Shown here piece after piece: positions 13,547 to 64,000 of a stretch of DNA of 64,000 bases. Numbering within the stretch: position 1 is the first letter of the stretch; each line of letters begins with the position of its first letter. The position numbers and the translations under genes were made by a program. The DNA is taken from assembly GCA_050084985.1 (NCBI GenBank), contig JBITNC010000001.1, positions 70,866,001-70,930,000 on the forward strand. The letters are read 5' to 3'. Source of the DNA: Nageia nagi (Eukaryota; Plantae; Pinophyta). The notes below the pieces were generated by a model. That model was not told the DNA's origin. It ran no database searches and saw nothing but the letters and a program-made list of their open reading frames with translations.

Positions 13547-13761
13547 CCAATTTTAGCAAGCACTCCTCCTAAAATATTACAAGATGTAATTTGAGATCTT
13601 GATCCATTGAACATCTCAAGCTTGGGTGGTAGGGAAAAGTTGTAGATATATTTTTATAATGGTAAAGTGAATACACCATCATAATATTCCTAATTCTATT
13701 AGGGTATATGATCATTCTCAATCATTAATATTCTTATAGCTAGGTCACCACTAGAGGAATT

Positions 13762-14566: not shown

Positions 14567-14580
14567 TATTGGAGCCCATA
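14567..14580 (+). promoter_or_regulatory. Primer-binding site (decayed TGGCGCCCA type)
   Basis: tattggagcccat immediately after the LTR CA end. Confidence 0.65.
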
Positions 14581-15039
14581 TTTTATAACATTTTCTTTCT
14601 CTTAATTAGGGCTAGAATATAAGTTCTTTTGAACCTACCTATCTTGTTACATCAAGAACAATAGGTTCCTTGGTTGCATTTGATCAACAATTTTTTAAGT
14701 GTGATAAAAATGGTGAACATAACTCCTAAAATCTTGACCAAATTGATGGTAATTCTTGAATTTAAATTTCTTATGGTAAAGGCATATGAACTATGGTCTA
14801 GGTTATCAATCACCCTAGAATGGATGCATACATTATCATAGATTCTACCATTAGTGCCAATGCTAATAGTAGCATGATTGCTAGAAACCATGCATCTAAT
14901 TTAGGTACCTTCATAAATGAATAATATAGACAACTTGAGTCTTAAGTTGCACATCTTAGGAAAAAATTCAAAGTTCATGCAGATTAAACAAAGAACAAGG
15001 GTAACCTATTAAGCATGGAGATTCATAATACACTCCTTG

Positions 15040-16619: not shown

Positions 16620-17849
16620 GAATATGTAGTTGAAGCAATGGAATAAAATCAAAACATTATTGCACAAGTTGGGAACACCATAGTTCCATACAAAAAATAT
16701 TGAAATCCATGAGGACAATGATGAAGATAGTGAGGAAGATGAAGAAGATAGGGATACCATGTAATTGTATAAAGAAAAAAGTGTTAGCACATATACCATT
16801 ATCTATAAGATAGTTAAAAAGGATACAAGATATCTCAATAGACATAAAAAATCATAGGATGACCAGTGTCTATACTAGAATTATTAGTTGCATTGTCCTC
16901 ACTACTGCAAATGTAATCTAAATCAATATGAGTTAGAAGAGGATGATGTCAAGATAATATTATGCAACATTGATACTTAAGAGTTATAATTTGAATCAAA
17001 CATGAATCAAAATGCTAACAAGGTGGAAGCCCATGTTAAGGTCAATAAGAAGATAAGGAAAAATGAGATATCATGTACCCTTGATACTTTAATACATGGA
17101 ATCTAGAAGGTACAAAGGTAAAGGACTTGGTAGGAATGAATAGGAAATGAAAAGTTACATACAAAAATATTTGAATAAAATGAAGGAAAGAGTGGCTTAT
17201 GAATAAAGAATGCAATTCAAAGAAATTTGGTCTCATACAATAGTGATGAAGAATTAGAAGTAGAATCAAATCTACAATCACTCAATATGATTGAGTTATC
17301 ATCAAAAATCAAAGAAAATATTCAAAGAAGGCCAATGCCCATGCTAGATCTAATGTCCATGCTCACATTAGCACTTACACTAACCTTAGCATCCAGGTTG
17401 TGGAAATAGATAATGATTCTTCTTACCCCATACTTGAAATGATAGTTTCTAGGTCTATTGATGTGTTCAAAATGGATGATGACTTTTTCATATGAAGGGG
17501 ACAATATCAAAGTTCAAATCATTCCATACCAAGAGGTAATTCAAATTTGCTTATCATATTGATGCTTACTTTGGAGAGGATATGGAGGACATAATAAGTT
17601 CTTCCATACTACACTAGCCTACCTTCTTCTTTCTTTACATAGGATTAGGCTAAGTAGTTAGGTGTGTGTGTGTAATATTCTTTCTCTTATGACATAGTAG
17701 TATTGGTGGCATTTCATAACCTTTATTAACCTAGTGATAATATACCATGGTTAAATGAGCCTCCTATTGAGATAAATATTAATACAAAAGAGGTACCATA
17801 GATTTTTCATATTGGAACAAAAATCATTGGGTAAGACAAGCAAACATAT

Positions 17850-18656
17850 TAATAGTTATTTATAGGATTCAAGGATGTATTTTCTTAGGAATACAATGAT
17901 ATGATATGCTTAGATTCAACTTTTATGACTCATAATTTGGTGGTACAAGAAGATGCCAAACCTATACAATAGAAAAGAAGACCAATACACCCAAAGCATT
18001 CTTTTCTAGTCAAGAATGAAATTGATAAGTATCTTAAGGAAGGATTCATTGAGCCCATTGATTATTCATCTTGTTTAGCCAACTTGTTCCAAATTTGAAA
18101 CCACATGGATAAATTAGATGTTGCACAAATTTTAAAAATTTAAATAAGGTTTTTCTAAAGGATCATTTTCCTTTGGCACACATTGACATAATTATGGATT
18201 CTACAATAGGACATGAGTTGTTATCTTTCATGTATGATTGCTCAAGATACAAAAAAAAAAATCAATAAAGAGGATTAGTATAAGATAACATTCACTACAC
18301 CTTGGCAAACATTTTGTTAGGTAGTTATGCCCTTTAGCCTCAAAAATGTATGGGAAACATACCAAAGTGTAATGGTAACTATGTTTCATGATCACATTCA
18401 TAAATTAGTTGAAGTTTATGTTGATGATATTCTTGCTAAATCAACTAAAAAGGAAAATCATTTGGAGGATCTAAGAGTCATTTTTGAAAGAATAAGATAA
18501 TTTAACTTGAAGCTAAATTCTAAGAAGTGTGTTTTTGGGGTATCTAATTGCAGGTTGCTTAGTTCCATTGTATCTAGAAGAGGCATAGAGATAGAACCTA
18601 AAAAAGTTAAAGCTATAATGGATATGCCTCCAAAAAGGAATATTAGACATCTTAGA
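17850..18656 (+). pseudogene. Reverse transcriptase of element C
   Basis: KDHFPLAHIDIIMD, VMPFSLKN, EVYVDDIL, LNSKKCVFG motifs. Confidence 0.9.
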
Positions 18657-20113
18657 GCAATCAAAGAATAGTTTCCATGTCTTATCCTCACACTACTCAA
18701 CTAGTGCCACAAGCTCATTCTTGTTACTATTTTCACCACATGGTGTTTCTACAAATATATCAACTATAACCAATCCCTTGAAAACTTTTTGGTATGTGTA
18801 TAGATGGTCAAACTCCTATAGTTCTATTATCCATTTGGTTAGCCTTCCTTCCAACTATGGTTTTGATAACAAGTACCTTAGTGGATCAGCTTGAGCCACA
18901 ATGAAGGTAGTGTTGGTGATCATGTAGTGCCTCAATTTTTATATTGTGTATACTATGGAAAAACATAACTTCTTAATTGGTGTGTAATTGATTTATGCAT
19001 TTTGTAGTGTCTTGGATAAATAGTACATAGCCCTCTCCCCATTTTCATTGTCAAGTTGCACAAGGACTTTCCCAATAGCATTGGTTGTAGTTGAGATATA
19101 CAAGTATAGAGGCTTTATATGATCAATTGAATGTAAAAAAAAATAAATAAATAACCAAGTAACTCTTAATGTCTTCAAATGCCTTTTGACACTCCTTGGT
19201 CCATATTAACTAATTTTCCTTCTTGAGAAAGTAAGAGAATGGATTTGTTCTATCTACTAACTAAGCCATGAACCTTTTGACTATTTTTAACTTTCCTTGT
19301 AGACTTCTAAGCTATCAATATTCCTTGTTGGAGTCATATACATTATAAATTTAACCTTTTTAGGGTCTATTTCTATGCCTCTTCTACATACAATGTAACA
19401 AAGCAACTTGCCACTAGATACCGCAAAAACATACTTCTTAGCAATTAACTTCAAGTTAAATTATCTCATTCTTTCAAAAATGAATCTTAGATATTGTAAA
19501 TTATTTTGCTTTTTAGTTGATTTAGCAAGAATATTATCAACATAAACTCCAAATAATTTATGAATGTGATAATGAAACATAGTTTCCATTGCACTTTGGT
19601 ATGTTACCCCTACATTTTTGAGTCCAAAGGGCATAACTACCTAACAAAATATTCCCCAAGGTGTAGTGAATGTTATCTTATAATGATCCTCTTTATTGAT
19701 TCTAATTTGTTGTATTTGGAGAAATCATCCATCAAAGATAATAACTCATTTCCTTTTTTAGAATCCATAATTATATTAATGTGTGGTAAAGAAAAATTAT
19801 CCTTTAGGCAAACCTTGTTTAAATCTTTGAAATCTATGCAACATCTGATTTATCCATATGGTTTCAAAGTTGGAACAATGTTGGCTAAATAAGGTGATTA
19901 ATCAATGGGCTTAATGAATCCTAGCTCAAGATACTTATCAATTTCCTTCTTTACTAGAAAATAATCCTTTGGGTGCATTGGTCTTATTTGTTGTTGTACA
20001 ATTTTGGCATCTTTCTATACCACTAAATTATAAGTCACAAAAGTTGAATCTAACCCTATCATATCACTATATTCCTAAGAAAAGATATCTTGAATCCTAT
20101 CAAGAACTATTGA
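18651..20113 (-). pseudogene. Inverted segment: second RT copy + RNase H + start of aRH
   Basis: Reverse complement aligns to 17850-18656, then LYLYISTTTNAIGKVLVQ...YYLSKTL (RH) and EDKTWKLFFDCSK (aRH start). Confidence 0.9.
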
Positions 20114-21831
20114 GTAGTGTGAGGAATTATGTTAGTATCTCTTGAAGGTGGTATGATTCCTATGGTTTATAAGTTAAATTTTGAATGCAAAAACATCATG
20201 GCTAAGTATGAGTCTTTAGTCTTGGTATTAAAGGTAGAAATCAACCTTGGAATCAATTAATTGGAATTTTATTGTGACTCATAGCTTTTCATAAACCAAA
20301 TTAAATATGTTTACAATACAAAGGACTTAGTAGCTATGATGCTTCAAATATGTTGTACATAGATTCAAATTGAGCTCATTTTAAGGAATAATAATAGATT
20401 TTTTGGATGCTATGGCTAATGCTACTTCATTAATACCTATCTCAGTTGAAGATGGGGAAACCATTATGTAAATCAATAGCCTTAAATATTGTTATTTTTT
20501 GAATGATGATGAATTTCAAGGGTTTTTCAAGAAAAATCCACTCATATGTGCTATCCTCCCATTACATGAATGGTATGTTGATATCTATAAGTACCTCAAG
20601 CAAGGAAATACTCTAGATTCATGTTATGCCAAGTTCCTCAAAAGAAGGCTAAAATAAATGGCTACAAGGTATGTAATTACTGGTAATATTATTTATAAAT
20701 GATAATTTGATGGTACTTTGATTAGATGTCTAAATGAACTTGAAGCAAATAGGTCTATGGAACAAGTACATGATAGCATAAATGGAGGTCATTTCAATGG
20801 TAAAGCCATCTATCATAAGCTCTTAAGATTATGATATTATTAGCTATCTATGGAAAAGGATTGCATTTTACATGTTCACAAATGTAAAAAGTTCCAAAAG
20901 CATGCTAACTTGAAATAAGCTCCTTCAAGTGAATTATTCATAATGATATCTCCTTGGCCTTTTGATATTTGGGATTTAGATTTAATTGGAATTATCAATC
21001 CTAAATCTAGTGAGGGATACAAATTCATCCTAGTTGCTATATAATACTTCATTAAATGGGTAGAAGATGTACCTTTGAGATCCTCCAAAGGGTCTTAAAT
21101 TGTGTAATTCATGACTAAAACCATTATATCAAGATTTGATGTTCCATATCATGTCAACATGAAAAATGGAAAGAATTTCAAAAGTAAGTAAGTTAGGGAA
21201 TTTTGCAAGAATTTCAAAATCAGGAAAAGGTTCTTATCAACATATTATCCATAAGTAAATGGAAAATTAAAATAAAATAACAAGATAATTATCAATATTT
21301 TATGCAAGACAATTAAGAAAATTCATAAACATTGGCATTCATAGCTTATATACATATTATGGGTATATGGAACAAGCATCAAATTAACTACAATTGCACT
21401 CCATTTCATTAGTCTATGGAGATGAGGTAGTATTACCATTGGAGGTAGAAATACTATCATTGAGGGTGTCTCTAGAAGGAATTATTGATTGGGAAGAGAA
21501 ACAAAAAGCAAGATTGAGGAAGCTAGAAGGATTATATGAAAATATAATCCATATATTAGAACATCTCAAAGCTTATTAATGAAGAGCTAAGAAAGTATAT
21601 GCCAATAATATTATACCATGAGAGTTCCAAGTAGGTGATCTAGTACTCAAGGAGAATCATCATAAATCAGAGGATGAAAATCAAGACAAAGGAAAGTTTG
21701 AGACTAATTGGATAGGTCCTTACATCATCAAGTTGAAATATCCAAACAATGCATACAAATTAACTATAGTTGATGGAAAAGTTGATAAATTATTAACCAA
21801 TGCAAAGCACCTCAATCCCTTTTATGCATAA
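20110..21831 (+). pseudogene. aRH remainder and integrase of element C
   Basis: GIMLVSLEG...KLNFECKNIMAKYESL; GGHFNG zinc-finger region; PWPFDIWDLDLIG...YFIKWVE; NWIGPY; ends NAKHLNPFYA*. Confidence 0.9.
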
Positions 21832-22369
21832 GGGAAGCTTGTCACATAAGTTCTAGATGTTGTACTTTAGTCAGTCATCAGTGTAGAGGTCATGAATTAG
21901 GATCCTATATCTATTTCTATTTTGTTAAGCTAGCACTCATGCTAGCCTTCTATATAAATTTCATCATTCAACTCAATGCCCATGTTGGTATTCTTAGCAT
22001 ATTTTAGATAAAAATAAAAATCACAAGGATTAGAGGTTACATTTAGGTTGGATAAGACATGTGATAACTTCATATCATAATCATTCAATTATCATCCATA
22101 GAAGATAATTAGATAATTTAATTTTATTATCATATAGCACACATAGATTAAACATCTTAGAATAGTCACACCTTAATCATAGAAAAATTGCAAGCTCAAA
22201 ATCAAATCAAGGCTCATTGCCTACACTACCTTTAGTACCTGCACTAACATTTTTGCATCAAATTAGATTATTCATCAAAGGAAAAAGTAGGTATCATTTT
22301 TTAATCTCTTACCTCTACATTCATGTTCATAATTCAATGGTATCACGCTTCATGATTTACATGATACAT

Positions 22370-22735
22370 CATGTCCTTGTTGGGTGGATGTTAAATAACC
22401 ATCAATGTTTATGATCATTTGGTTGGGCCTAAACTAACTACTTTTCTTATTTTGGCCTAGTGATTGGGACTAAACTAATCATTAGTCTAATGGCCATATT
22501 GTCACTGGTACTATAATCATGCATGATTGGGAAATATACAAACTAATTTTATCTTAATCACATCTAAGAATGGGGCATGTGCCTCATGACGATGAACAAC
22601 ACATCACATACATGGTTGGAAAATATTCAAACCAACCATGTCTTTGAGTCACCTTTGCTATTTAGATAACAACTAACCTCCATATTTGAGTCATCTTTGC
22701 TAGTTTTATCTCAAATAACCTCCATATTTAAGTCA
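22370..22735 (+). repeat. 3' stem-loop array of element C
   Basis: Near-colinear with 6499-6720 (catgtcctt.ttgggtggatgttaaataa...ttggttggg.ctaaa). Confidence 0.85.
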
Positions 22736-22799
22736 TGTTTGTTCCCTTGTTACATATGCCCTTGATGTTGTAGGTACACTTGGTGAGTCTAGCTTGTCT

Positions 22800-23052
22800 T
22801 TAATTTTAGTTTCAAATACACTATCTTTTTTCACCTCCCTCTCTAGTTGTTCTAGACCATCCACTTCAAGGATATCATTTTGTTAATCACCCATAGCATT
22901 GATACATTCATTTATTTGATCAATGTTATCCAAATCTATAAGATCTCCATCACTCCCCTCAATCCTTCTATTATGCAACCTTAAGTTGTAGTTCACAAAA
23001 ACCAATTTTTCCAACCTTTCTTTCATGAATCTATTATGCTTTCTTATATGAG
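22800..23052 (-). pseudogene. hAT transposase C-terminal (dimerisation domain) fragment
   Basis: Minus translation HIRKHNRFMKERLEKLVFVNYNLRL...DLIDLDNID resembles the hAT IHTKKRNRL...LVFVHYNLRL motif. Confidence 0.75.
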
Positions 23053-23059
23053 ATAGATC

Positions 23060-26000
23060 AAGTTATGATAAGACTTAAAAATTTAAGAATGTATGGTGAT
23101 GATGATTATGGTGTACCTAGAGGTGATATTGTTAATTATTCTTTGATGAATAGTGTTGAGTTAGAACCATCTAGTTATGAACAAGCATTTAATAATGATT
23201 TATGTATAAAAAAGTGGAAGAGGAAATCAATTCCATCATGAAGAATGATACATATGAGCTTGAGTATCTTACAATAAGAAAAATGTGTGTGGGTTTTGAA
23301 TGCAGGTATAATAGTGATGGGATCATTAAGGCATAAGCTTGCAAAAGGATTCACACAAAGGTATGGAATAGATTATGAGGAAACCTTTACACTAGTTGCA
23401 AGATAAGAAATAATAAGGTTGGTACTTTCTTTAGTTGCCTATAAATATTGGTAGGTACATCATATGGATTTTTAAAGTGCATTATTGAATTATTTTTTTA
23501 ATGAAGAGGTCTATGTACAACAAATTCAAGTTTTATAATAAAAGGAAAAGAGAATCTAGTATATAGATTAAAGAAGGCATTGTGTGGCATCAAATAAGCT
23601 CCTAGAGCTTGTTATTCAAGGATTTATGGATACTTCCATCAATATTGCTTCATAAGAAGCAAGAGTGAACCTACCCTATATATTATGAAATAAGGTGACA
23701 TAATTATTCTTATTTATATATATGCTAATGATCTTATTTACATGGGTATTTATTCAAATATGAATGATGATTTCAATAATTCTATGATGCAAGAGTTTGA
23801 AATAAAAGATCTAAGTTTGATGCATTATTTCCTTGGTATGGAGGTGTATGAAAGAGAAGATGAGATATTTATTTTTCAAACTAAATATGCTAATGATATG
23901 TTGAAGAAATTTGACATTGAAAATATAAAACTAGTTCCAATACCAATAGCTCATTGTGATTTATTATACAAAGATGATGGGTCTGAAAATGTTAATCTAA
24001 CCATTTATAGAAGCATTATTGGAAGCTTGATATTTCTCACAAACTCTAGATTGTATATTGAACATGTTGTTTCACTTGTATGAAGGCATATGACTAATCC
24101 TTTTAAAATTCACTTAAAAGAAACTAAAAGAATCCTAAGTTATATGAAAGATGCAACTAATTTTGGTATTTATAATTTCAAAAATGATGATGTGAAACTA
24201 GTTGGCTTTAGTAATTTGGATTGGGGAAGTAATCTAGATGATAGAAAGTCTACATTAGGTAATTTCTTCAGTATAGGGTATGGAATGATCATGTGGAGTT
24301 CAAAAAAATAAAGTATAGTTACTCTATTATGATGAGCCCCAACTATTGGCTAAGGCTCAAACATGCCCTAGGAAAGGGACATTTACCTTCAACCTTTAAA
24401 TCACACCAATAAAGTGTAAAATAATATAATACATATATTTTTAGCTATTTATGGTAGAAATGAAGTAAATGATCCACAATTATGCTTAGTTACCCAATAT
24501 AGATGATTAGGAAGCCAAACACAAATAAACATGTAAAGAGATACCTCTAGATCCAACATCTCACTTCCAAGTGCAAATACTCCACAAACAATGTAATTAA
24601 CCAAGATCTTATACCAACATCTAGGTATATAGAGCAAAGACACTTGAATTGATGAAAGTAATGGAATTGCATTGATATAGCAATAAAGAGCTCAATTACA
24701 TATGTTTTTTACCTAAGGAGCTTACACCAATATTACCTCTAATAGGGTTATTATGGATGGCTCTAGGGCCTCATCAATTGTAACAGTAGCAAGGCCAAGC
24801 CTAGGAATTCCTTACCATTATTCAATGGAACAACTAGTACTACTCTCTCAAATAGCTAGAGTAAGCAAGAGGTTAGCCTTATATCACATCAAGACCTCAA
24901 ATGCAGATTGGAACCTATAAGTAGAAAAGATAGATTTCTCACATTCAATCCAAAAAGGAGGGTTTAATCATATATTCAATATGTCTAATATGTTCTAAGC
25001 ATCCTCCTTTTATAGATGAAGTGGTTTATCTTCTAATCTCAAGTTGAGTTGATCTATCAAATTACAAGAGTGATTTGTATTATCTCAATGCTAATGTCTA
25101 AGATAAAATGCCTTGGGATGGGAGTAATTACATTCAAGGACCAAGAATGATAATGTTGAAAAAGGGTAGACTTCAAGGTACCTTAGTATCAATGCCATGA
25201 GCTAGATAGCCTCCAAGAGTATGACATAGGGTCATAGGGATTCCAAATGCTTAATGTAGGGGTTTATATGTCCTACTTAACCTAACTTCCAAGTGTGGGG
25301 AGCCTTTGGATTCCTTGGGATACTAAATATCTCTCTAAGTGTATCACATCCAAGAATAGGATTCTTCATAGTGCCTCGAAGTTTGCATAATCACCTAGAT
25401 AGATGCTCTACCTTGAATAGGGGAGTATTAATAACAAGAGGACCATCTAATTCTAATATTACAACCATCAAGGCTAGGAATATGTAACACCTCATTATTA
25501 ATGATTAATATTGGATTTATAAATATAATGGCCTTGGTATAATAAATACATCATTATTGGTATATTTGGATACTCAACTATACATAATATGCTAACTAAG
25601 GGTCCAAAGTTCCATAATTAGAGCAATAAACTATTCTTAAAGTGGAATTTATAATTAATTAGCCAAATAATACCTAAAATAAGAAAAAGTAATCCTACTA
25701 TAATGTTCCCATTTATCAATGGTGAAATGGGGAAAACACCATAAAAATGGGGATATTACAATTTTGCACCTCTTGAATTGCTTGTCCCTAAGCAATTTAG
25801 AACATCCATGTCTATAATAGAGTATTCTTAAGCCTCTCTATCTTCATTATGGTTGATCCAAGAATAAACAAACTTTAGCTTAGTTTGCTTAATAGTCTTC
25901 ATATCAGTTGCAACTTTTGAATCTATAAACTCTAGTTCTTTAGAATAATTTATCTTCATTGTCAAATTATGATCTTGAGTTGAAAAATGCAAGTTCAAGT

Positions 26001-48769: not shown

Positions 48770-49596
48770 CACTACTACTAAAAAGGGCATTTTCATCCTT
48801 TTTTGCATCCAAAACCAATGTTTTTTGTTTTTGCATTTTCCCATTTTTTCCAACACAAAAAATGATGCAAATAACAAGTCAAAAATTACATCCTTTTTTT
48901 TAACACTTTTTACGTTATTTTTTTTGCATCCATAGAGCCAGTTTCTATGTTTTTTTTTACACCTAAAATGTGTCTAATTTTGCATATTTAAGGGTCAATT
49001 TTTACATCCCAAGGTGTCAAAAATTATGTCATTTTTTGCATCTTATAGGGTCTAAAACTGTGTCAATTTGTGAGTCTAAAAGGGTCATTTTTTACATCAT
49101 TTTTCTCTATTTATGTTCCCTTTTGTATTGAAAATCACATTGGTTTTGTTTGAAAATTATAAAAAAAATCAATTCATAATATTTATTAATACTTTTTCCA
49201 TTTCCATTAAAATGTTAATCGTATGTAAAAATAATATGCTTGTTTCAACAATCATATGGAAAAATAATACGTAAATTGTATGTTGCAACTATTTCAATGA
49301 GTGATCATATGTTAAAATAATATGCCAATAACATTTTGTAAAACTATGATAAATTATGCTAAAATCTATACACCAAAATATACATTGACAAAACCATGAT
49401 AACATCCACATCAAAATATATCAAAATAACATACATATAGACATTTGAATATGCTAAAATGATATACATCTATACATAAAAATATGTCAAAATGATATAT
49501 AGGTCAGTGTGAATACATCCATGTGATTTCTCAAAAATGATACAATGTTAATACTATCCATATCATGAGTACAAAATGGTAGTACAACTACTAATA

Positions 49597-52560
49597 CTAA
49601 ATATTAACATCATCATTAGATCTAGACTCAGTACCTTCTGACTCACTACCATGAACACCTGATTGATCACCACCTAACTCACTACTTGAGCCACTACTTG
49701 ACCCACTATAATGTCTACACCCTAGTTGTTGTATTGGCTCACTATATGCCCTACTAGGACATGTTGGCTCATCCTCAAATAAATTATCACATCTCACATC
49801 CTAGGTAGATGGTGAATCACCCTCATTTGATGCACTCACATGCGATGCACCCCCTACCCTCTGCAATGTAATACCCATGTGCAAATAATAAGAAAATAAA
49901 TATTAGTGTGCATACAATCATACTTATAGAATATATGCATCACCTATAAGAAATTCATGATATGTTTTTATTAATTAAAATAATTGAAACTACTTATACT
50001 AGCATTCACAATGTCCCTCAAGGCTTGGTAACCATATGTGATACCATATTGGTGTTCATTCTCATTAGGAAATTGATTGAAATCTCTCAACTACAAAAAA
50101 AGTTAATGAGTACTATATTAAAATCCATTTACCTAGCTATATCATTGAAAATCACTGCATGTAGAAAATATACTTACAAATCAAGCTTCCATAATCTTCA
50201 CCGCTCCACTTCTAGCTCGATGCATAATACTGCATCCCAATTTGGCAAGTCTAGACTTTGATGCTTTTTCTTGTGATGTCTCCAAGCCTTATGTTTTCCA
50301 TTTTTCTACCTTGTCTACTTTTTTAAGTAGCATCTTCCAAACCTTATTATGAAATAATTAATTAGTATTATGTCAAAATAATCAATTAATTAGGTTCAAA
50401 TAATAAATGGATATGATAATATTGATCCATACCTTCTTATGGACATCAATTGGTTTTTGTGCTAGATTTCTTTGGTCAGGGGGAAGTTTCATCACTTTTT
50501 ATCTAATATGATATCTAACCCTTTTCAGATTCAAGCCTACCTATTGGATCGCTTTCATCACCCTTCACCAAATTCATGTTTCAAGTTTGTTATTATTCTC
50601 TTTTTTGCTATAAAAATACAAATAATAACAAATTAGTTTTAGTCTCTCGAAATATTAAATTAACAAAAGCAAAACATATATACCAAAAAATGATGCAAAA
50701 AATGAAAACAAAAACATACCAAAATCATCTTGTTTCTTCCATGGTCGATCAAGGGTTTTTGCAAATTCTTCTATTGCAGCATTTTAGAGAGATTTGTAAA
50801 ATAGTTTACTTGAAAAATAGTCAAAATCATATTAGTAAATGATCAATATACTTCTAATAAATATGTAAATTTATTTTTTTCAAATTGAAACTATTACCAT
50901 TTTCATCTTTTAGGACCTCTCCATTCTTCCTCACAAAAATTTGAAGATTTCTAGAGCCTTGAGTCGTCAATAAGGATTATTGATTGACCAACTCTACTAA
51001 AATCATATATTGCATGTAAATTGATTGAAAATATGCTTCAAAATATAAATTAGAATAATTTTATATTACTTCTTAATAAATTAAGTAATTAATTATAAAT
51101 ATTCACTTGAACAAGTGATGTCAGGTCTCTACGATGCTTCTCTAGAATTGTCACCCCTAATACTTGACATCAACTCAGCTTGGCTAAACATTAATTTAGC
51201 ATATGTAACAACCCCTTTTAACTTCTTTGTATGTTCAATAAATTAAAAAAATAAAGTGATTACATTTCCTACTTAATGAAATATATATAGTATAATTTAA
51301 AATTGCATATATGTTACATAATACATATTGATACTTACAAGTATTTTTTTTAATTTTTGCAATGTCATCTTTCTCTTTTTTTGTATCCTTTTCATTTGAT
51401 TTTCTTTTTCCCTTATCTTTATCTTTATCACCCTTCTTTCTATGCCCCATATATGGTAAATGGTGATCACTAGAAGAAAGTAAACAAAATTAGAGATATA
51501 ACATCAATATTTACTAAATAACATCAAAATACATTACTAATTAATATATAACATCATTTAATTAGTAAATAACATCATAGGCACAAAAATGTGTAGGATG
51601 ATCTAGATAGAAGGCATTTGCAAACAACTACTAGATAATGGGGCAAGGGCCCTAATATATTGACTTTCTTAACTTGGAAATTATGAGGAGCATAATGGTT
51701 CCTTTCGTATATTACATAATTATACAATGGTTATCCTTATCTTTGATAATTTATGTTTTTATTACAAATATAAGGCATTTGCAAACACCTACTATAGAAT
51801 GGTGCAAGGGCCCTAGCTAATAGATATGTTGCTAGAACACAAATTGTATGATGATATTTCTTCAACAAGATAGAGGAATAAAAGCTAAAACTTCATGATA
51901 AAGCCAATGGAAGGGTTGTTGATAATTTTTGGTAATTTTTTAGTTGTTTTTTAGGCTAGAGATTATTAGAGAGCTTATAGGAGTTGATTAGAAAGAGTTT
52001 TAGAGATTATAGAGGTTATATTTTAAATTGAATATCCATTAGAGATAGTAACACTCTAACATATTATGATTGCATATCATTTTGTTAGTAAATATATATT
52101 AATTAAAACTTAAGTTTGAAGTGGATGTTTACCTACATTGTGGTTTTAGTGCTATAAATACTTGTGTCATATTATGTGTGGACATTTTTACTATTGGTTA
52201 TTTATTATTTTATGTCACAAATATCCATCCTCCATGATCATATGACTTACATGGTAGCTTTTTATCTTGAGCATGAGAGGAATTAGTAGTATTAATGGTT
52301 GTGAAAGATGCAATCCATAATAAGTTAGAATCAATTCTTTAAAATCTCTTCGCAATATTTAACCCAATTTAATTTGAATGCTTCATTAAAAATTTAACTA
52401 AACTATTGCAAGTAAGTTCAATCGAATTCTAAATACAAAACCCTATGAGAAAACATGCCAAAAAATAAAAAAAAATAAGTTAGAATTGAGTGAAATCAAG
52501 AATAAATCAAGTTAGAATTGAATGGAATTAGTTAGAAGGGAACTTACTTGGTGCTCTCTC
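49597..52560 (-). pseudogene. Multi-exon TnpA-like (Ptta/En/Spm, Transposase_24-like) gene
   Basis: About 8 GT-AG-bounded exons; first coding exon MGHRKKGDKDKDKGKRK (NLS-like); QEKASKSRLAKLGCSIMHRARSGAVKIMEA motif at ~50270-50180; last exon ends with ORF 49597-49797. Confidence 0.6.
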
Positions 52561-52755
52561 ACTAGAAATCAAATTTTGTATCTTTTATCACCAAATAGGT
52601 CAGGGGGAAGTGACTGGGGAAGTGATAGGTAGCCCTACTTTTATTTTTTTATGATTTTTGATGTAATTTAATACAAAAGAGGATGCAAATTTGTGTCCTT
52701 TTTTGCATCTAAATAGAAATAAATAAATAAAATTTTAAGTTAAAATCATTATTCT

Positions 52756-54028
52756 TTAGGTTATTGGTTAAGGTTAGAGTTAGGGTTAGGGTTAAGGTTA
52801 GTGTTAAGGTTAGCATTAGCATTAAGTTACTTAGCTATCAAGGTTATGGTTAGTGGGTAGGGTTAGGGTTAAGGTTAATGGTTAGGGTTAGGGTTAGAGT
52901 TAAAGTTAGGGTATGTCATTAGTGGTTAGGGTTAGCATTAGGGTTAGTGGTTAGGTTAGGGTTATCATTAGTGTTAGTGTTAATGGCTTGGCTTATTAGT
53001 GGTTATGGTTACTATTAGGGTTAGCATTAAGGTTAGGTTAGGGTTAGTGTTAAGGTTAGTATTAAGGTTAGCATTAGGATTAATGTTTAGGGTTAGCATT
53101 AATGGTTAGGAGTTAGGGTTAGGGTTAGGGTTAAAGTTAGTATTAAGGTTAGTGATAGCATTAAGGTACTTAATTATGGTTATGGTTAGTGGGTAGGGTT
53201 AGGGTTAAGGTTAGAGTTAAGGTACTTAATTAGTGGTTAGGGTTAGAATTATGGTTAGTGTTTAGGTTAGGGTTAGGGTTAAGTTTAGTGTTAAGGTTAG
53301 CATTAGCATTAGGGTACTTAATACTCAAGGTTAGGGTTAATGGTTAGGGTTAGGCTTAGTGTTTAGGGTTAGCATTAATGGTTAGGGTTAGAGTTAGAGT
53401 TAGGGTACTTAATTAGTGGTTAGGTTTATAATTAGGTTGGTTAGTGTTAGTGTTAATAGTTTTGATTATTAGTGGTTAGGGTTACTATTAGGGTTAGCGT
53501 TAAGGTTAGGTTAGGGTTAGCATTAAGGTTAAAGCTAGTCAGGGTTAATCATTAGGGTTAGCATTAGGATTAGGGTTAAGGTTAGGGTTTGGATTAATGT
53601 TTAGGGTTAAGATTAATGGTTAGGAGTTAGGGTTAAGGTTACTGTTAAGGTTAACATTAGCATTAGGATACTTAATTATGGTTATGGTTTGTGGGTAAGG
53701 TTAGGGTTAGGGTTAATGGTTAGGGTTAAGGTTATAGTTAGGGTATGTAATTAGTGATTAGGGTTAGGGTTATGATTAGTGGTTAGGTTAGGGTTAGCAT
53801 TAAGTTTAGAGTTAGGGTTATTAGTTAGGGTCACTAAGAGTTAGGGTTTGGGTTAGCATTAGCATTAGGGTACTTAGTGCTCAAGGTTAGGGTTAATTAG
53901 CTTAGTGTTTGGGTCAGTTAGAATTAATGGTTAGGAGTTAGGGTTAAGGTTAAGGTTAGTTTCAAGTTTAGCATTAGCATTAAGGTACTTAGTAGTTAGG
54001 GTTATGGTTAATGGGTAGGATTAGGGTT
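52756..54028 (+). repeat. Degenerate TTAGGG-type telomere-like array (~1.3 kb) inside the CACTA
   Basis: Many TTAGGG hexamers with TTAAGG, TTAGCA, TTAGTG variants; higher-order blocks repeated (e.g. ~52997/53469, ~53077/53591). Confidence 0.95.
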
Positions 54029-54094
54029 TTGTTGATTAATTATAACTCCTAAAAGAACTTTGATTGATGATGTCTCTTCTATTGCATAGAATGT

Positions 54095-54290
54095 ATATGA
54101 TCATTTTATATTTATAGTTGAAAAAAATTATAGATTATTATTATTCTTATATATGATCATTTTATATTTGTAGTTGAAAAAAATTATAAATTATTATTAT
54201 TCTTGTATATTATCATTTTATATTTTACTTAATCTTTAATAATTCTAATTCTAAGATTAAAATATTTATAGATTATTATTATTCATGTAC
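54095..54290 (+). repeat. 56-bp tandem repeat (~3 copies)
   Basis: atatgatcattttatattt.tagttgaaaaaaattata.attattattattctt at ~54095, 54151, 54207. Confidence 0.8.
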
Positions 54291-54345
54291 TAATCTCTTT
54301 TTTATTTAAATTGTAAAATAGGTTAATGACTAATTAGCTTATATA

Positions 54346-55720
54346 ATGTCACTAAGGTAGAGGAGGAGTTATGTATCATTAGATTTAGATATTCAAATGC
54401 TACTACCTCAGCATGAGAGAGTTGTTAGGAGGTCAAGGAGTGATGTGTCATATGATTTAGAGGAGTTACTTACACCAATTACTAGGAGGTTCAAGGAGTG
54501 ATGTGTTATCTAATTCAAAGGATTTGTCTGCACCAATTATTATGAGGCTAAGGAGTGATGTATCATTTGATTCAAAGCCTAAGATATTTCCTAAACATCC
54601 CATGAGGTGGAGTGATGTTTCATCAAATGATGACAAGGTAAGATAAATGTTATATTATTAGTAAGATGTAGTTAAAAAGGAAAGATCATCTAAATTATCA
54701 CTTTCATGCATGATATTATTTGAAATATTTAACTTTAGTTTATTGATAATATTATAGGAAAAAAATGTGTAAATGATCAATAATTCATCATCATCATCAG
54801 AAGATGATGATGCCCATGAGGTAATCAATTGATCAATATTTGATTTTATTTTTGTATTTTTATATATTGAATGATATCAAATAAAACTAAATAAAATCAA
54901 TATGTAGATCCAAAAGATGAAGCCAAAATAATGTGTAGGTCCATTCATAGATGAAGTTAGAGAGATACCTAGAAGAATAAGATTTCAAAATTAGCTTCAT
55001 GATCAATTAGTAGAGGATACACATGAGTAGCCATTTGATCTACCAGAGGAGGATATTCATGATTTGGGTTTGATGTGCATGACACCAAAGCTACAACTTA
55101 AATATCAATATACATATGATCATGGGGCATATGATGTATGACCAACTGAATTACCTTTTACAAAGGCTAATGAGATATTTCCTTATAGTGGTCATCGATA
55201 CATGATCAAACCATCTAAAATGCACTCTAGATATGGTTTGTTTATACATAGTATTGTGGTTGTTACTCTAGGTTCTAAGATAGAGCCATTGATTCCATTT
55301 TGTGGGCTAATTTACATAGCAATGGTTTGGAGACTATAAGTGAGATATATGTATAGTATGTCTACATATGGATTATGTGCAAATGCTTCCAATATTACAC
55401 CTCCATAGTAGTTATAATGTTTATACATTGATGGTCAATAAAAAATACAAGGAAACATATCTAGATACATAAATAGTTATTTAGGTGAAGAATGGGCACC
55501 AAATTACAAAATTCACCAATGTACTAATGATAAATAAGACTTCATGGGTAGACAAATGAATAAGTATATAGTTTTTATTCTCATTAAAACTCTTAATGTA
55601 GGTGATGAGCTACTAGCTCACTACAGTTATAAGAGACCTAATCTAGCACATAAGGCATGAACTTTGGAGTTAGGAGATGATAAAAATGTAATAATTTGTC
55701 CAAGGCCAAAGTATGAATGG
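54346..55720 (+). pseudogene. Three-exon SET-domain protein gene carried by the CACTA
   Basis: Exons 54346-54637, 54758-54820, 54908-~55720 with GT-AG junctions; exon 3 in one frame: IKPSKMHSRYGLF...PFCGLI...LYIDGQ*KIQGNISRYINS...APN...IKTLNVGDELLAHYSY. Confidence 0.8.
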
Positions 55721-57783
55721 ATATTTCAATTTGTATTTATGGATAATGCATTGTATGTTTGGATGTATCAATTTTTTATATGTAGTATGAATGTATCAAT
55801 TTGTATGGATGTATATTCAAATTGTATGTTTGTAACTAATTGTTTTTATTCTAAATTAATGGTTTGTAAAGACTTATTTTATAAGCAACAAATAATCATC
55901 ATGATCAGTCAATAATGATAATTTTTACATCAACATTACTTCAAATAATGTAAGTAGGAGTGATAAAAAGATACTATGAAAAGCATGGATTTTTAATCAA
56001 TAAGCAAAGTTTATATCTAAGCCAAATCTAACAGCTCCTATTCAAATACATTTGTGGGATTCAAGCATTGATGATGATGAATTAAGAGAGGATAATATTA
56101 TTCATGATGATGATGCTAACAATAATGTTGATGAAGAAAATGGAATTGATGGTTTACTTAAGTCCCTTTATATTCATGTTGATGATGAAGAAAGAGATGG
56201 TGATGAAAGAGATGATGATTTAGAAAGGGATAGCATGTATAGTGCTTCCAAAACTAAATTATATGAAGGAACAAATGCAACTATTTTATCAACTATCCTA
56301 CTTTGAATGAACATAAAGGCCAAATATGGATGGTTAGATACAAGTTTCACTTCTCTGCTAAGGTTTGAATTTTATTTTATTATATGATTTTTCAATTTCT
56401 CGTATTTTAATTTATTTTAATGAAAGTAACTACATAAATTATTTTTAATTTGTATTATACGTTACTAAAAGAAAAGTTAATTCCAAGTGATAATGTCATC
56501 CCAGATTCATGCAAAAAAACACATGGCATTATGAAAGATGTAGGGGTCAAGTATAATTCATACCATGCATGTATTAATGATTGCATATTGTATAGAGGAG
56601 AAGAATATGATACAAATACTAAATGTCCAAAGTGTGAAGAATTAAGATACAGTGAAATAGGGAAAAAAAAACTCCAACTAAGGTTATTCATGTAATGTCA
56701 ATCCTTCCCAGGTTGATACAAATATTCTATTGTAAGTCACTTATAGAGTTAATGGATTGACATGTAAGAAATAGAAGTGAAGAATGTGTGTTGTGTATAA
56801 CTATAGATAGTAAAGCAATGATACATATAGAGGAGAAGTGGTTTGAGAAATTTAAGGATGAACCTAGGAGTGTTATATTGGGTTTAGCAATGGATGGTGT
56901 CAATCCATTTTCAAACTAAACATCCACTCATTCATGTGGGCATATTTTTATAATCAATTATAACATACCTCCATGGTTGTCTATAAGAAAAGAGCATTTG
57001 ATGTTGGTTGTTATAGTTCCTAAATTGAAATAGGTTAAACATATGGATGTATACATTAAACCAATAATTAATGAGTTACATCTCTTATGGAAAGGAAATC
57101 AAATGTATGACATAATTAGACCTATCAATCAGAGGTCATTTAAATGTTATGGCATACTATGTTAGACTATACATGATTATCTAAGGCTTTCTATTTATAT
57201 AGGTATATGTATATATATACATGTCTATATTTGATTTTTTATAATCATATGAATTATATGCATTCTCTAAATAAACTTATTAGAGGTATTCATACTGTTA
57301 GAATATTAAGTTCACTAGGGTTAATTAATTTTTCCTTAGTTTTTACTATTCTAGCTGGGCTATTACGAATAACCACATATTTGTCTACTTGTGCATTTTG
57401 CTCCCGCATGGTTGACATGTATTGTAAATTAGTTTGTGATTTGCCCTATTTATTCTAGGATTAATTCTCATTTTTGTATGAATCAATCTGAGGATTTTAG
57501 CTTCTCTTTCTATTTGTGGTGTCTTGCATCTCCTTATTTTCTAGGTTGAATTGATCTCCCTACAATTCTTCACATGGTACCAAAGCTGGTTGGATTTTTG
57601 CAAGCATTTAGACTCTTTGTGAGGCTTTCTTAGATTGATTCTCTTGAGGGATCTAGGTGCATCATTTTGTATTTTATGGGTGGCTTGTCCTAGCCTCCCT
57701 CCTGCTCATGGCATGCCCAGTGTAGCCTCCCAGGTGCTTCCCAACCATTAGAAAATGCTCTCATGTAGCTCCTCTACACAAGT

Positions 57784-58062
57784 GATCTCTACCTTGATTG
57801 CATCAGGAAGCTTGCAGATAATTGTACAGGTCTCCAAGGATTCCTTGTATTCAATGTAGTCGATGGAGGTACTGGATCTAGCCTGGGCTTTCTCCTCCTC
57901 GAGCATCTCTCCATGGACTATGGTAAGAAGTTCAAGCTCAATTTTATAGTATACCCATCACCATAGGTCTCAACATCTATATTTGAGCCCTATAATAGTG
58001 TTCTCTCCATGCACTCACTCCTAGAGCACATAAATGTGGTTATTTTGCTTAACAATAAAGCC
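57784..58062 (+). pseudogene. TUA: Captured alpha-tubulin fragment (~aa 116-208) in the Copia leader
   Basis: [92 protein letters not shown]. Confidence 0.95.
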
Positions 58063-58649
58063 CCCAACTTGTGCCATGCCTGGCCTCTGACCTACATGGT
58101 TTTGGCTACTCCTCACGATTCTCTTGGTCTCTACACTCCCATGGCTTGCTCACTGTAGATCTAGTTGGACTCTGCATGTTTGTAGCCCCTTGGAAACCCA
58201 CTCTCTTCTCCTCAGCTCGCATGGTCCTCCTCCTTGTGCTTGGCTCCTCACCTTCCATTCTCGTTGGGCTCTGCAGGTTGATTTATTTTTCTGGTCACTT
58301 CCCTATAGTTTTAAAAAAATTAAAAAAATAGTTTATTTTCTATTTTTTTTTAAATTAGAAAAATAAATTTTAATTTTTCTATAGTTTTAAAGGGCCATTT
58401 AACTGATTTGGAAGGCAAACACATTTAATTCCATAACTTGAGCAAACGGAACCTGATTGAGGTGCCATTTTTTACATTGTAAAGCTGGAGATAAGATCTT
58501 CCAAACTAGTAACATTGTAAGCCTTGATGGCAAGTTTCTTGGGGGGGTCATTTGAAAGTGAATAAAATTTGGATGGGGTCTTCTTATGTTGGGTGCTGAT
58601 TTTTGCACCTCTTATCGCTTGGTTTCTTGGTTCCTTGTTGGTTTTTGAG

Positions 58650-61600
58650 ATGGAGCATTCTTCATTTAAAATTGAACCTCTTACACCTCATAACTATCAC
58701 ATTTGGAAGCCATGGATGTTGACAATATTGGCACAAAGAGGATTAAACACACTCATTAAGGAACAAAAGTTCACATTCAAATCTGATTATGAAACTTGGT
58801 CATTTACAAAGGAAACTGGTGAAGCATTTGGGTTGATTAAAGCAAATGTTAGCAAGAGTTTGTGGTTTCATATTGATAATATTACCACACCACATGATGC
58901 ATGGGATAAATTGGAATCCTTTTTTGGTAAAGTTGACACTATGAGGGCTATGCAAATTCATGCTCAACTTACTGCATTGTCTCCTGATGATTTTCCCACC
59001 ATGGTCGATTATCACACTAAATTCAAAGAATTGTACATACAATTGATGGGTGCTGGTAAAAAGAAGAAAGAGGATGAATGCATCTATTTGATTTTATCAA
59101 ATTTGAAGGGTCCATTTCATGTATTTGCTTCTACATTCCTCTCTAAAAAGATGCTATGGGTGATAAATTCACAATGCCTAAGTTGGAAGAGTTTTGTGAG
59201 CATATTACAAGGGAAGAGTCTAAACTTTCAACTCTTGAGACATCTTCATCTTCATCTAAAGCATTGACTGCATCTAAAGGTAAGGGTAAGCCCAAGCCTA
59301 AGCCTAAAACTTCTACTTCTCAGCCAACTCCTAAAGCTCCTAATTCTAAATCCACTCCAGACAAAGAGAAGCCTAATTGTTCCTATTGTGGGAAGCTTGG
59401 TCATGTAATTGAAAAGTGTTATAAAAGGATGAAAGATGATAAAAGGAAGCAAAAATCTGAATCTTCTCATGTATCAGGCAAGGCTTTGAATGTTCATAGG
59501 AAAGGACATTCAATTTTAGATAGATGGGTTATGGATTCAGGTGCCTCTCATCACATAACTCCATGCTGGAGTCTTTTCCATCTCTTTGTTCTACTTCTAC
59601 TTCTAGCATTGAGGTTGGTGATTCCTCTCACATCTTTGTGAAGGGAAAAGGGTACGTTCTAGTTGATGGTGGTCACATCCTTGATGTGCTTTTGGTTCCT
59701 GAGCTCTCTTCCAACCTTCTTTCAATATATCAGATTTGTAATACTAGGGGGGGAGGACTGTGTTGTTCACTCCTGATGATTTTGAGATATGAAGTTTGAA
59801 TGAACCCCAATCCCTTATTGCTTATGGTGATGTTGATCATTCCTTATAGTTGTATCATTTTAAGGGATTTGATGATGATTCAGGTACTGGGTTGGTTTCC
59901 CATGCAGATTCTATGAGTAGACTTTGGCATGAGAGGTTTGGTCATCTCAACTATGGATATTTGTAGGAGTTGCATGCTCATAATATGGTCATTGGCTTAC
60001 CTAAGGTGTCTTGTTCTGATGGTGTTTGTCCTGGTTGTGCTCTTGGGAAACAACACCAAGACCCTTTTCCTAAAGGTAATGCCAATTGCGCATCTTCTCT
60101 TTTAGAGTTGGTGCATAGTGACTTGATGGTTTTTTCACACCCTTCTTTCACTGGAGCTTGATATGCACTTACATTCATTGATGATTTCTTGAGACATACT
60201 TGGGTGCATTTTCTCAAGTACAAGAGTGATGTCTTTGCTCATTTTAAAGTTTTCAAGGCTTTGGTCAAGAATCAATCTTCTAGTTGCATTAAGAAGTTTT
60301 GCATAGATAATGGGGGGGAGTATTTTAGTATTAAGTTTTTAGAGTTCCTTCAAAAACATGGTATAATTCATTAGCATTCAATTCCCCACACCCCAAAGTA
60401 GAATGGAGTTGTAGAAAGGAAGAACAGAACATTGAAGATGGCTAGTTGTATGATGCATTCTCGAGACTTTCCTCCTATTTTTTGGGTTGAGGTAGTCAAT
60501 TATGCAAACTACATTCAGAATCATACTCCTCATTGAGCTCTTGATCATATGACTCCTGAAGAGGCTTGGAGTGGAACCAAGCCTAATGTGTCATGCTTTA
60601 GAGTATTTAGTAGTCATGATTGGGCCTTCATTCTAAAGTGCAAGCATAAGGCCTTGGAAAAGAAGAGTAAGCCTCTCATTTTTGTTGGTTATAGTGAGGA
60701 TATGAAGGTGTATAGATTGATTGATCCTGACACCATGATCTTTTCTTCCACACTCATGTTCAGTTTGATGAGCACCTTCTTACTTCTCCCTCTTTTTCTC
60801 ATTCCTTGGTCTTACCTGACTCCCATGACACATCTTCTAAGATCCTTCATGGAGAGGATATTCCTGAGGTTGTTGCTCCTACATCATCTATTGATCCTCC
60901 TCCATCTCCACCACCTGTTGTAGCCCCTTCTTCTCCTCCTCCTGATGTTGCATCTTCTTCCACTGATGGTAGGTGCATGCCCAAATGGGCTCACTCTACA
61001 CTTGAGGATGCAGCACCTTTCATTAAGGATCTTCCTCCTTCTCATTGCCATTCCACTGGTTCTAGTCTTGTTGGTCAGGCACATTCAGGTGATCCAGAGA
61101 ATTTTTCAGAGGCCCATGGTTTGCCAGAGTGGGATGATGCTATGGCAGTTGAGTATTCTTCTTTGATGAAGAATGATACTTGGGTGCTTATTCCTTTACC
61201 TCGTGGGAGGAAGTTGGTTTGATGTAAATGGGTGTACCGAACCAAGTATGTAGCTGATGGTTCCATTGACAAGTATAAGGCTCATCTTGTTGCTAAGGGG
61301 TTCTCACATGTTGAAGGGATTGATTATTCTGAGACCTTTGCTCCTATAACCAAGATGGATTTTGTTCACCTTGTGCTTGCTCTTGCTACTACTCAAGGAT
61401 GGTCAATGTTTTAGATGGATGTGAAGAGTACTTTTTTGCATGGTGATTTTCATGAGGAGATCTATATGGAGTAGCCTGTCGATTTTGTCTAGGATTCTGC
61501 ACTTGTTTATAGGCTTAAGAAATCACTCTATGGCCTCAAACAAGCTCCTAGGGCATGGTATGAGAAGATGGACACTTTTCTTCTCTCCATTGATTTTGTT

Positions 61601-62623
61601 TGATGTTCCTCTAAACCTACAGTCTATATTTGGTGACATGGAGTAGATATCACTATTTTGGTGTTGTATGTAGATGACCTTCTTCTCACTGACACTTCAT
61701 GTTCTTGCATTTAGGTAGTTCAGCAAGCTCTTTCTAAGTGCTTTGAGATGGCAGATCTTGGCTTGGCCCACTACTTTCTTGGTTTTTAGGTGACACAGAT
61801 TGATATAGGGATTTCTATTTCTTAGTAGAAATATGCCTTGGATCTTCTTCATCAGTTTAGTATGGCTGATTGTAATCCTTCTCCAACACCTTTTCAAAGT
61901 GGAGTAACTTTGACTTCCTCTTGCACTTCACCATTATGTGATGCTACTTTGTATTGCCAGTTGGTTGGGAGTCTTCTCTATCTCACTCATACTTGACCAG
62001 GCATTTCATATGTTGTTGGGCTTATTTCACATTTTGCACAGACCCCTCATGAGTCTCATTGGTAGGTAGCCCAAAGGATTCTTCGATATGTGAGGAGCAC
62101 TACTCACTATGGTTTGCATTACATGAGAGGTGATCCAGTGTTGAGTGGATATATCGATTCTGATTGGGTTGGCTCTTTTGATGATCATCATTTTACTTTT
62201 GGCTATGTTTTTTGTCTTGTTTCTTCCCCTATTACTTGGTCATGCAAGAAGCAACAAGCTATTGCACTTTCATCGACTAAGGTAGAATACTGAGTAGCTA
62301 TTTATGTGAGTCAGGAGGCACTTTGGCTTCGACAATTATTGGAGGAGTTTGGATTTTCTTAGTCTAGGACCATAGTTCTTTGGTGTGATAATTAGAGCAT
62401 AATTCATATTTCACATAATTCTATTGAGCATTAGTGCACCAAACATATTGAGGTTCACATGCACTTCATCCGTCAGCATATTTAGGATTGCATCCTTAGC
62501 TTAGAGTACATTCCTACAGTGGAACAAGTTGCGGATATATTCACTAAATCCTTTGCAGCGCCTCATTTTCTTCAATTGCATGGCTTGCTTGGGGTGAAGG
62601 AAGTTGTCCTTGGGGGGTGTTGA
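58650..62623 (+). pseudogene. Copia gag-pol (gag, CCHC knuckle, PR, IN, RT, RH) with stops and frameshifts
   Basis: CSYCGKLGHVIEKC, WVMDSGASHH, LWHERFGHLN, DNGGEY, GIDYSETFAP, LYVDDL, ADIFTK. Confidence 0.95.
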
Positions 62624-64000
62624 TGAGGACATCTTCCTCTCCATCCTCCCTCATCTATTGTGAGATGTTTTTTTCCCCATGTGGTTTTTTCATCATCTTG
62701 TAGTAGAAATTTTTGCACATATTGTACATGAGTACCTGATCAAGCCTTGTTACCGGGACTCATTTTTTGTGGGTATGCCACTTTCTTTCCTTGTTCACTT
62801 AAGGGGGGGTGTTAGAATATTAAGTTCACTAGGGTTAATTAATTTTTCCTTAGTTTTTACTATTCTAGCTGGGTTGTTATGAATAACCACATATTTGTCT
62901 ACTTGTGCATTTTGCTCCTGCATGGTTAACATGCTGTTGTAAATTAGTTTATGATTTGCCCTATTTATTCTGGGCTTAATTCTCATTTCTGTATGAATCA
63001 ATCTGAGGATTTTAGCTTCTCTTCCTATTTGTGGTGTCTTGCATCTCCTTATTTTCTGGGTTAAATTGATCTCCCTACAATTCTTCACACATACAAAAGG
63101 TTATCATGCTTGTCCATGATGTGCAAAAAATATTTCATCAATATATTCAAGTAAGATGAATAAGATGGAATATATTGGCCACAGGAAATATTTGCCAATG
63201 GATCATACTTTTCAAAAAAAGGAGGCCTATGGTCCAATAGATAAAATCCCTATTCCTATTTATGAAACTTCTATGAGTTGGTTGATAAAGTACCATGAAT
63301 GTGAAGAACCCAAGATGAAGGTATTGCTTTAGGGTTAGATGATGAGATTATTCTTGGAAAAAATGATTTACTAGCAAGTTAAATATTATACATTACAATA
63401 TATTTGTAATATATTTTTTATTTTGAAAATATACAATGTTTATTATGAATTGGTTACATGTTTTCAAGAATGAACAAATTTTCAATATTTTATAAACTAG
63501 AATATTGGAAGGAGTTGTTAGTGACACATTTAATGGATCCTATGCACATTGTAAAGAATGTTGCAACTTGTTTATATTAGCATACAATAAGCAAAGAAGA
63601 AAATTCTGATATCATGAGAAAATAATTAAAATATATTAAGAAAATGAGATCTTTATGGATAACTAACTATCAATATGGAAGAAAAGAAGTACCTACACCA
63701 ACATGGCTTATGAAAAAAGATGAATTGGAAAAGTTACATAAATTTATTCAAAACATCAGAAAACCAATAGATTATGGATCATCTCTAAGAAGTGCATTTA
63801 GTGATGATGGTAAAATCACATGGTTCAAGACTCATGATTACCACAACTTCATGAAGGTATTGATCTCATATTATGTTTTTCAAATTTTTCATTGAAACAA
63901 AAATACTTGTTATATTTATGCTCATACTTTTTGTAGCATATTTTTCCAATTGCAATTCATGGATGTGGGGGTCTACCTGTTGATCTTAGACATGCAATCA

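Follow-up and report, generated by a model that had tools for sequence, protein, structure and literature searches.

A divergent SET-like gene upstream of the TnpD transposase in a decayed CACTA family copy from Nageia nagi

A stretch of 64,000 nucleotides from Nageia nagi (assembly GCA_050084985.1, contig JBITNC010000001.1, positions 70,866,001 to 70,930,000; here called the window) contains a three-exon gene with a SET-like domain, situated upstream of the CACTA transposase gene TnpD. The two genes probably belong to one decayed member of a CACTA/EnSpm family of high copy number; the master element would have carried an accessory SET gene of its own 5' of TnpD, in a shared transcription unit and with a role for the element. 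This reading builds on the anatomy of the gene, the similarity of its C-terminal half to SET domains, its fixed linkage to TnpD and to a TTAGGG-like array, an ancestrally open reading frame and decay in the window copy, all of them read from sequence comparisons. The related loci came from JGI metagenomes, nine in number and reducing to five independent copies, as L002 is identical to L001 across the SET region and L008 is identical to L007. Six copies were aligned over 54330-54960, from exon 1 to the start of exon 3, and five (the window and four JGI metagenome loci) over 216 columns of the SET region, with stops read as X. The gene is laid out as follows.

54346 to 54637, plus strand: exon 1 (six-copy alignment and repeat array)
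54638 to 54757, plus strand: intron 1 (GTAAGA...TATAG), 120 nucleotides, AT-rich
54758 to 54820, plus strand: exon 2 of 21 codons, with both boundaries in phase 0
54821 to 54907, plus strand: intron 2 (GTAAT...TGTAG), 87 nucleotides
54908 to 55687, plus strand: exon 3, comprising the pre-SET region and the SET-like domain (translation, stop-free stretches and copy alignment)
55199 to 55624, plus strand: SET-like domain (hhalign, Pfam piece match and ESM Atlas)

The SET motifs occur in the expected order, YMIKPS..(S)GYGLF, then YIDG..GN..RYINS....PN, then GDELLAHY, and the positions given for them in a preliminary description of the window, made from the sequence alone, are exact: the Y of YGLF at 55232, YIDG at 55424, GNISRYINS at 55451-55477 and GDELLAHY at 55601-55624. 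The Tyr of ELxxxY is kept in GDELLAHY. For profile-profile comparison a panel of SET genes was drawn from viral contigs with the degenerate motif RF/YINHSCxPN, first nine sequences and later 72, and their membership was verified by Pfam (E = 2e-20 to 5e-11). With hhalign the five-copy alignment matched the nine-sequence panel at P = 9.5e-6 (probability 83%, score 38.7) and the 72-sequence panel at P = 1.1e-5; across both panels the probability was 82-83% over 55 columns. None of 300 column shuffles reached the score of 38.7 (mean 12.4, standard deviation 2.5, maximum 22.4), and the reversed family alignment gave P = 0.46. The window row alone gave P = 8.9e-6, and a second run with an alignment of tiled pieces gave P = 5.9e-4. 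The aligned span runs from LYIDG..GN..RYINS....PN through YIVF..IK.LNVGDELLAHY, and the significant columns lie only between LYIDG (55421) and about 55639, i.e. in the C-terminal half. The N-terminal half (YMIKPS..SGYGLF..IEPLMPFCGPIY) is collinear with the GxG and YxG strands at a relaxed setting (mact 0.05), where SGYGLF and PFCGPIY are the segments that align with the SET-N strands. A features search of the ESM Atlas with the piece L001:10313-10573 returned SET in 22 of 30 named matches (score 0.92, 171 shared features). The domain is thus a divergent, minimal SET-like one, well supported by sequence for its C-terminal half.

Comparison of the six copies supports the three-exon structure that had been proposed, as the splice sites at 54638, 54757, 54821 and 54907 recur among them. 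The donor of intron 1 (GAG/GTAAG, 54637/54638) and its acceptor AG (54757/54758) are present in 6/6 copies, as is the donor of intron 2 (GAG/GTAAT, 54820/54821); at the intron 2 acceptor (TGTAG, 54907/54908) the AG is found in 4/6. The introns are AT-rich and carry insertions and deletions between copies that are not multiples of three, and all exon boundaries are in phase 0. Exon 1 opens with an ATG at 54346, within the family start region ATGCCACCAAGG, and a second in-frame ATG follows at 54397. A conserved TATATAAT at 54338-54345 lies directly 5' of the first ATG; if it is a TATA box, the ATG at 54397 becomes the likelier start codon. Tandem units of 57 nucleotides fill 54426-54577 according to Tandem Repeats Finder (TRF), each encoding 19 basic, Ser-rich residues. 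The repeat motif reads RR.RSDVSS.S.EFPTPIT, and the number of units varies between copies; a similar motif, SRSDKKI, recurs where the TnpD frame starts. In the window copy, exon 1 has a stop at 54358 and an additional base near 54490 that shifts the frame; the base is absent from family contigs and accounts for the apparent 58-nucleotide period that TRF reports there. Exon 2 encodes an acidic, Ser-rich stretch (...SSSSSEDDDA.E in the family). The exon 3 frame (codon starts at 2 mod 3) holds many point stops in the window over 54908-55687 and no frameshift. At its 3' end, after ...LELGDDKN, stands a conserved AAT/GTAATA (55687/55688), a candidate phase-0 donor, and unspliced read-through in family copies meets a stop 16-20 codons on, after a PKPKNKNK tail.

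What ties this gene to a CACTA element? The surrounding features are these.

52706 to 54040, no strand given: degenerate TTAGGG-like array, 1.3 kb, which precedes SET at a matching position in the window, L001, L003 and L004
55688 to 55884, plus strand: non-coding spacer with 22-bp tandem repeats (copy comparison)
55885 to 57295, plus strand: 5' part of TnpD (Pfam Transposase_21 and reading frames)
57296 to 63089, plus strand: Ty1/copia-type long terminal repeat (LTR) retrotransposon inside TnpD (LTRs and target duplication)
63090 to 64000 and past the window end, plus strand: continuation of TnpD (Transposase_21 profile positions 151-190 at 63120-63329)

The 5' part of TnpD consists of an acidic region followed by LYEGTN... 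and covers profile positions 7-114 of Transposase_21 (PF02992); the window copy lacks one base near 55942. Collinear pieces match at 56761-56916 (positions 7-44, E = 5.6e-6), 57043-57165 (positions 88-114, 2.1e-3) and 63120-63329 (positions 151-190, 1.6e-5). Each falls under the whole-protein cut-off, the gene being fragmented, and together they identify a Tnp2-type transposase downstream of the SET gene, in agreement with the TnpD assignment first made. The SET gene shares the strand of TnpD and precedes it by a constant distance in four copies, namely the window, L003, L004 and L007. Linkage of SET with the array holds in the window, L001, L003 and L004. The family is very abundant in several organisms, and parts of it are also found in air metagenomes: in Logan contigs of four runs, compared at 80% likeness or more over 54250-57290, the 3 kb met 11,700-23,400 contigs per run. 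The retrotransposon, with LTRs (57296-57574 and 62810-63089) that are 95% alike and a 5-bp target duplication, CATAC, is lacking from L007; its LTRs provide a minimum age for the death of the window copy of the CACTA element.

The gene is contained in a larger repeated unit, whose true 5' end lies upstream of 52706. The CACTA at 54350, taken at first for the terminus of the element, is a private change within the start region ATGCCACCAAGG, and as an element end it is rejected: other copies have CACCA, TTCCA or TGCCA at this position and stay homologous further upstream. The gene is therefore not delimited by a terminus on one side and TnpD on the other, as had been described, since that CACTA is a chance occurrence inside the start-codon region. 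Upstream of the gene the homology continues through about 300 bp of AT-rich sequence and then through the TTAGGG-like array in L001, L003 and L004, reaching 49925 in L001; in L007 and L005 these upstream segments are present as well, interrupted by small insertions. The repeated unit thus extends at least 1.6 kb upstream of 54350. The TTAGGG-type unit has six bases, and the usual plant unit has seven. Conservation of the array at the same place in four independent copies points to a component of the transposon family rather than flanking DNA or a telomere relic. As the termini were not located, the gene is assigned to the element by shared homology, not by flanking inverted terminal repeats.

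Was the reading frame ever open? No stop is common to all five copies in the 216-column SET alignment, three stops are common to three copies, and every stop has a sense codon in another copy, usually one change away. Over about 210 SET codons the five copies show no insertion or deletion apart from one codon. The lack of a universal stop and the near absence of insertions and deletions indicate that the ancestral SET frame was open. The preliminary description attributed the stops to decay of methylated cytosines, which holds in part. The window copy differs from the family by GC to AT changes at 146 places and by the reverse at 99, which fits cytosine deamination, and the stops CAA>TAA at 54770, in exon 2, and TGG>TGA at 55139 are of the C>T or G>A kind, but several others arose by transversion (TTA>TAA at 55337, GAA>TAA at 55535).

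There are a number of results that weigh against a SET gene in the service of its element. No single piece reached the Pfam gathering score for SET (PF00856, 22.4 bits), the best being L001:10313-10573 (E = 0.055, 14.3 bits, profile positions 61-104 of 105). The SET-N half alone was not significant (E = 0.22 and 0.08), and with the N-terminal piece the ESM Atlas returned no usable match. A search of the PDB by hmmsearch, with the C-terminal family profile and with the tiled-piece profile, found no SET chain. An AlphaFold2 model of the 87-residue C-terminal piece was unusable (predicted local distance difference test, pLDDT, 49.5; predicted template modelling score, pTM, 0.22). None of the copies has the His of NHS: the motif reads INSY, INSS or INSC, and INNY in L007. 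Neither CACTA terminal inverted repeats nor a 3-bp target duplication were found, the 3' end lying beyond the window and the 5' end not having been located. Between pairs of copies, the ratio of non-synonymous to synonymous substitution (dN/dS) lies at 0.86-2.0 in SET and at 0.64-1.18 in pieces of TnpD, with no signal of selection. No RNA runs holding the stretch were found, and no intact family copy was seen among those examined.

Could the domain be something other than SET, for example a protein peculiar to this transposon family, with a C-terminus that happens to look like SET motifs? The shortfall at the Pfam threshold, the blank sequence searches of the PDB, the insignificant N-terminal half and the unusable predicted fold are all as such a protein would give. 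In addition, Pfam found no match in seven window pieces and phmmer against the PDB found no SET with three, although window pieces are short owing to the point stops, which weakens single-piece profile tests. Against this stand the profile-profile match with its clean shuffle control, the collinearity of the motifs in order and spacing, including the GxG-like GYGLF at relaxed alignment, and the independent language-model search, which also points to SET. A chance resemblance is thus highly improbable. The SET identity first proposed stands beyond chance for the C-terminal half, but the N-terminal half does not reach significance alone; likewise, comparison with the SET profile, proposed as a check on it, missed the PF00856 threshold yet succeeded with profiles on both sides (P about 1e-5, shuffle-controlled). 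The atypical character that had been pointed out is confirmed, with NS in place of NHS (NSS, NSC or NSY across the family) and Cys clusters of the pre-SET and post-SET kind absent from the domain.

Did the gene originate by capture of a host sequence? Capture of host fragments is known from CACTA elements, and one CACTA copy might have taken up part of a host SET gene, as Pack-CACTAs do, and multiplied it without any use to the element. A dN/dS near 1 and the missing catalytic-site His would agree with passive transduplication. The ratio, however, cannot discriminate, as TnpD is equally near-neutral; near-neutral values are expected if the copies diverged after insertion, and as both genes behave alike they neither inform on the master copy nor separate capture from an element role. 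The gene, moreover, is complete, with a start codon, three exons, conserved splice sites and an ancestrally open frame, and it occupies one place in all copies examined. A HMMER search of 1.84 billion representatives with a 65-residue N-terminal piece gave five short fragments of the same family, all singletons from Logan, ENA or JGI, and one repeat artefact; neither an intact homologue nor a host-like SET gene was present among the representatives with this piece as sole query. Pfam found nothing in the five fragments, and further homologue searches, one starting from a family fragment and one from the C-terminal piece of L001, brought up nothing but fragments of the family. The lack of a close host homologue, as judged with the N-terminal piece, argues against recent passive capture, which the low similarity to any SET in fact excludes. 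Passive transduplication in general is thus an unlikely origin.

An accessory gene that belonged to the element therefore remains the preferred reading, and one can sketch how it might have functioned. In the master element, the first exon would have encoded a basic N-terminus rich in repeats and the second a short acidic stretch, with the minimal, divergent SET domain at the end of the large third exon. In En/Spm, transcripts from one 5' promoter are alternatively spliced to give TnpA and TnpD; by analogy, SET and TnpD may have formed one transcription unit. The product, either a stand-alone SET protein or a SET-TnpD fusion, might have worked on histone tails, or bound them, at or close to the element, and it might have helped the element to be expressed or to integrate, by anti-silencing or by tethering; on this view it is no mere host piece picked up passively. 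With the NHS His missing, a binding or pseudo-enzyme role is about as likely as catalysis.

The spacer between SET and TnpD is either an intron that joins the two in frame or a gap between two genes. If exon 3 is spliced at 55687/55688 to an exon that starts at 55885, a protein with an N-terminal SET domain and a C-terminal Tnp2 transposase would result. The AAT/GTAATA donor and the ATAG/G acceptor (55884/55885) are kept in four copies, and as both are in phase 0 SET and TnpD could be fused in frame. Beyond the acceptor the frame stays open into the acidic region of TnpD in L003, L004 and L007, with one private stop each, and the spacer varies in length between copies (197, 251, 254 and 308 nucleotides) by non-multiples of three. 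On the other hand, phase compatibility arises by chance in one case of three, the search for RNA runs with this stretch found none, an in-frame ATG (SRMIIITP) 10 codons past the acceptor could begin a separate TnpD, and in L004 and L007 the unspliced frame finishes plausibly, with a basic tail and then a stop. The fusion is thus a tentative proposal. Equally speculative is the wider prospect of an autonomous land-plant CACTA element whose transposase is fused to, or obligatorily co-transcribed with, a minimal SET, such that it would bring its own writer or reader of histone tails to the site of excision or integration.

Transposons that carry chromatin enzymes of their own are rare, and they show how mobile DNA handles host silencing. 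A SET gene on a CACTA element is uncommon, but there are precedents. SET histone methyltransferase genes have been described on HarbingerS and on oomycete MuDR elements (Kojima and Jurka, 2014, Repbase Reports, as cited in PMC12730594). As far as that citation describes them, these too are cut-and-paste families with a SET gene of their own beside the transposase; they belong to PIF/Harbinger and MuDR in oomycetes and others, whereas the present family is a CACTA of a land plant, and the likeness is one of description. SET sequences have also been captured by Helitrons. Of the same superfamily, CACTA/EnSpm, is Plavaka in the red alga Bostrychia moritziana, with an accessory gene, PAG2, that includes SET (PF00856) (bioRxiv 10.1101/2025.02.11.637652). 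PAG2, however, combines a DNA methylase (PF01555) with a SET that passes InterPro, whereas the family described here has no methylase, a SET far under the Pfam threshold, a plant host and a TnpD of the Transposase_21 type. The preliminary description knew of no plant CACTA-SET family; no land-plant CACTA carrying SET was found in the searchable literature, but SET genes on HarbingerS, MuDR, Helitrons and red-algal Plavaka limit the novelty.

As to the domain itself, the SET proteins of chloroviruses (vSET) and of bacteria and phages are similarly small, without flanking Cys clusters and with GxG, YxG, N.S..PN and ELxxxY in the same order. The best hhalign alignment was to this minimal kind in the panel, at 25% identity over aligned columns. 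The present domain differs from minimal SETs in the replaced His of NHS and in two insertions, one of 4 residues (GEEW) ahead of PN and one of 12 residues ahead of the last strand. SETMAR, the fusion of a host SET gene with a domesticated mariner transposase, would resemble the present arrangement in having SET N-terminal to a transposase only if the 55687-55885 splice is real. SETMAR is also a single-copy host gene formed by exonisation of a dead transposon; here the gene is on a mobile element with thousands of copies, and the fusion is putative. A parallel of another kind is VANC, the anti-silencing proteins of VANDAL (MuDR) elements, in which an accessory protein of a plant DNA transposon is thought to act on the chromatin of its own element. 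There is no sequence relation to VANC, and VANC function has been demonstrated experimentally, whereas the function proposed here is conjectural.

A SET gene fixed in an abundant land-plant CACTA family, and possibly spliced to its transposase, would extend the oomycete, algal and Helitron cases. If the fusion or the co-transcript proves true, SETMAR would have its counterpart on a mobile element, and retrotransposons guided by chromodomains would have a parallel in plants. The window adds a corrected gene model and boundary, a shuffle-controlled statistic for SET and the conserved link to the TTAGGG-like array. Its copy is a fossil, and it would take a young or intact one to make the family a candidate that can be tested.

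Some rearrangements, damage of a kind typical for dead elements, affect the SET exon in other copies. L007 carries a 5.3-kb insertion (L007:3211-8542) at the place that corresponds to window position 55613; parts of it are common to L005:1285-3207 in reverse, and it probably represents another repeat family. At L005:5113 (window 55276/55283) there is an inverted duplication with a hairpin-like junction, which may be a rearrangement or an assembly chimera. In L009 a SET fragment is joined to the upstream segment in reversed orientation.

This upstream segment, 3.7 kb at 48978-52690, recurs in L001 with its order kept; its counterpart in L009 is the reversed one that is joined to the SET fragment, which is truncated. 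Its edges near 48978 and 52690 are fuzzy and rich in the TTTTTGCATC-type motif, without a clean inverted terminal repeat. Ten pieces of the L009 homologue of the upstream region gave no Transposase_24 (TnpA) and no other convincing Pfam match. Where the upstream segment meets the array there is a near-perfect palindrome, at 52670-52705 in the window and at about 7860-7900 in L001 (AAAAAAGGATGCAAA/TTTGCATCCTTTTTT in L001), which may represent abutting subterminal motifs of two units.
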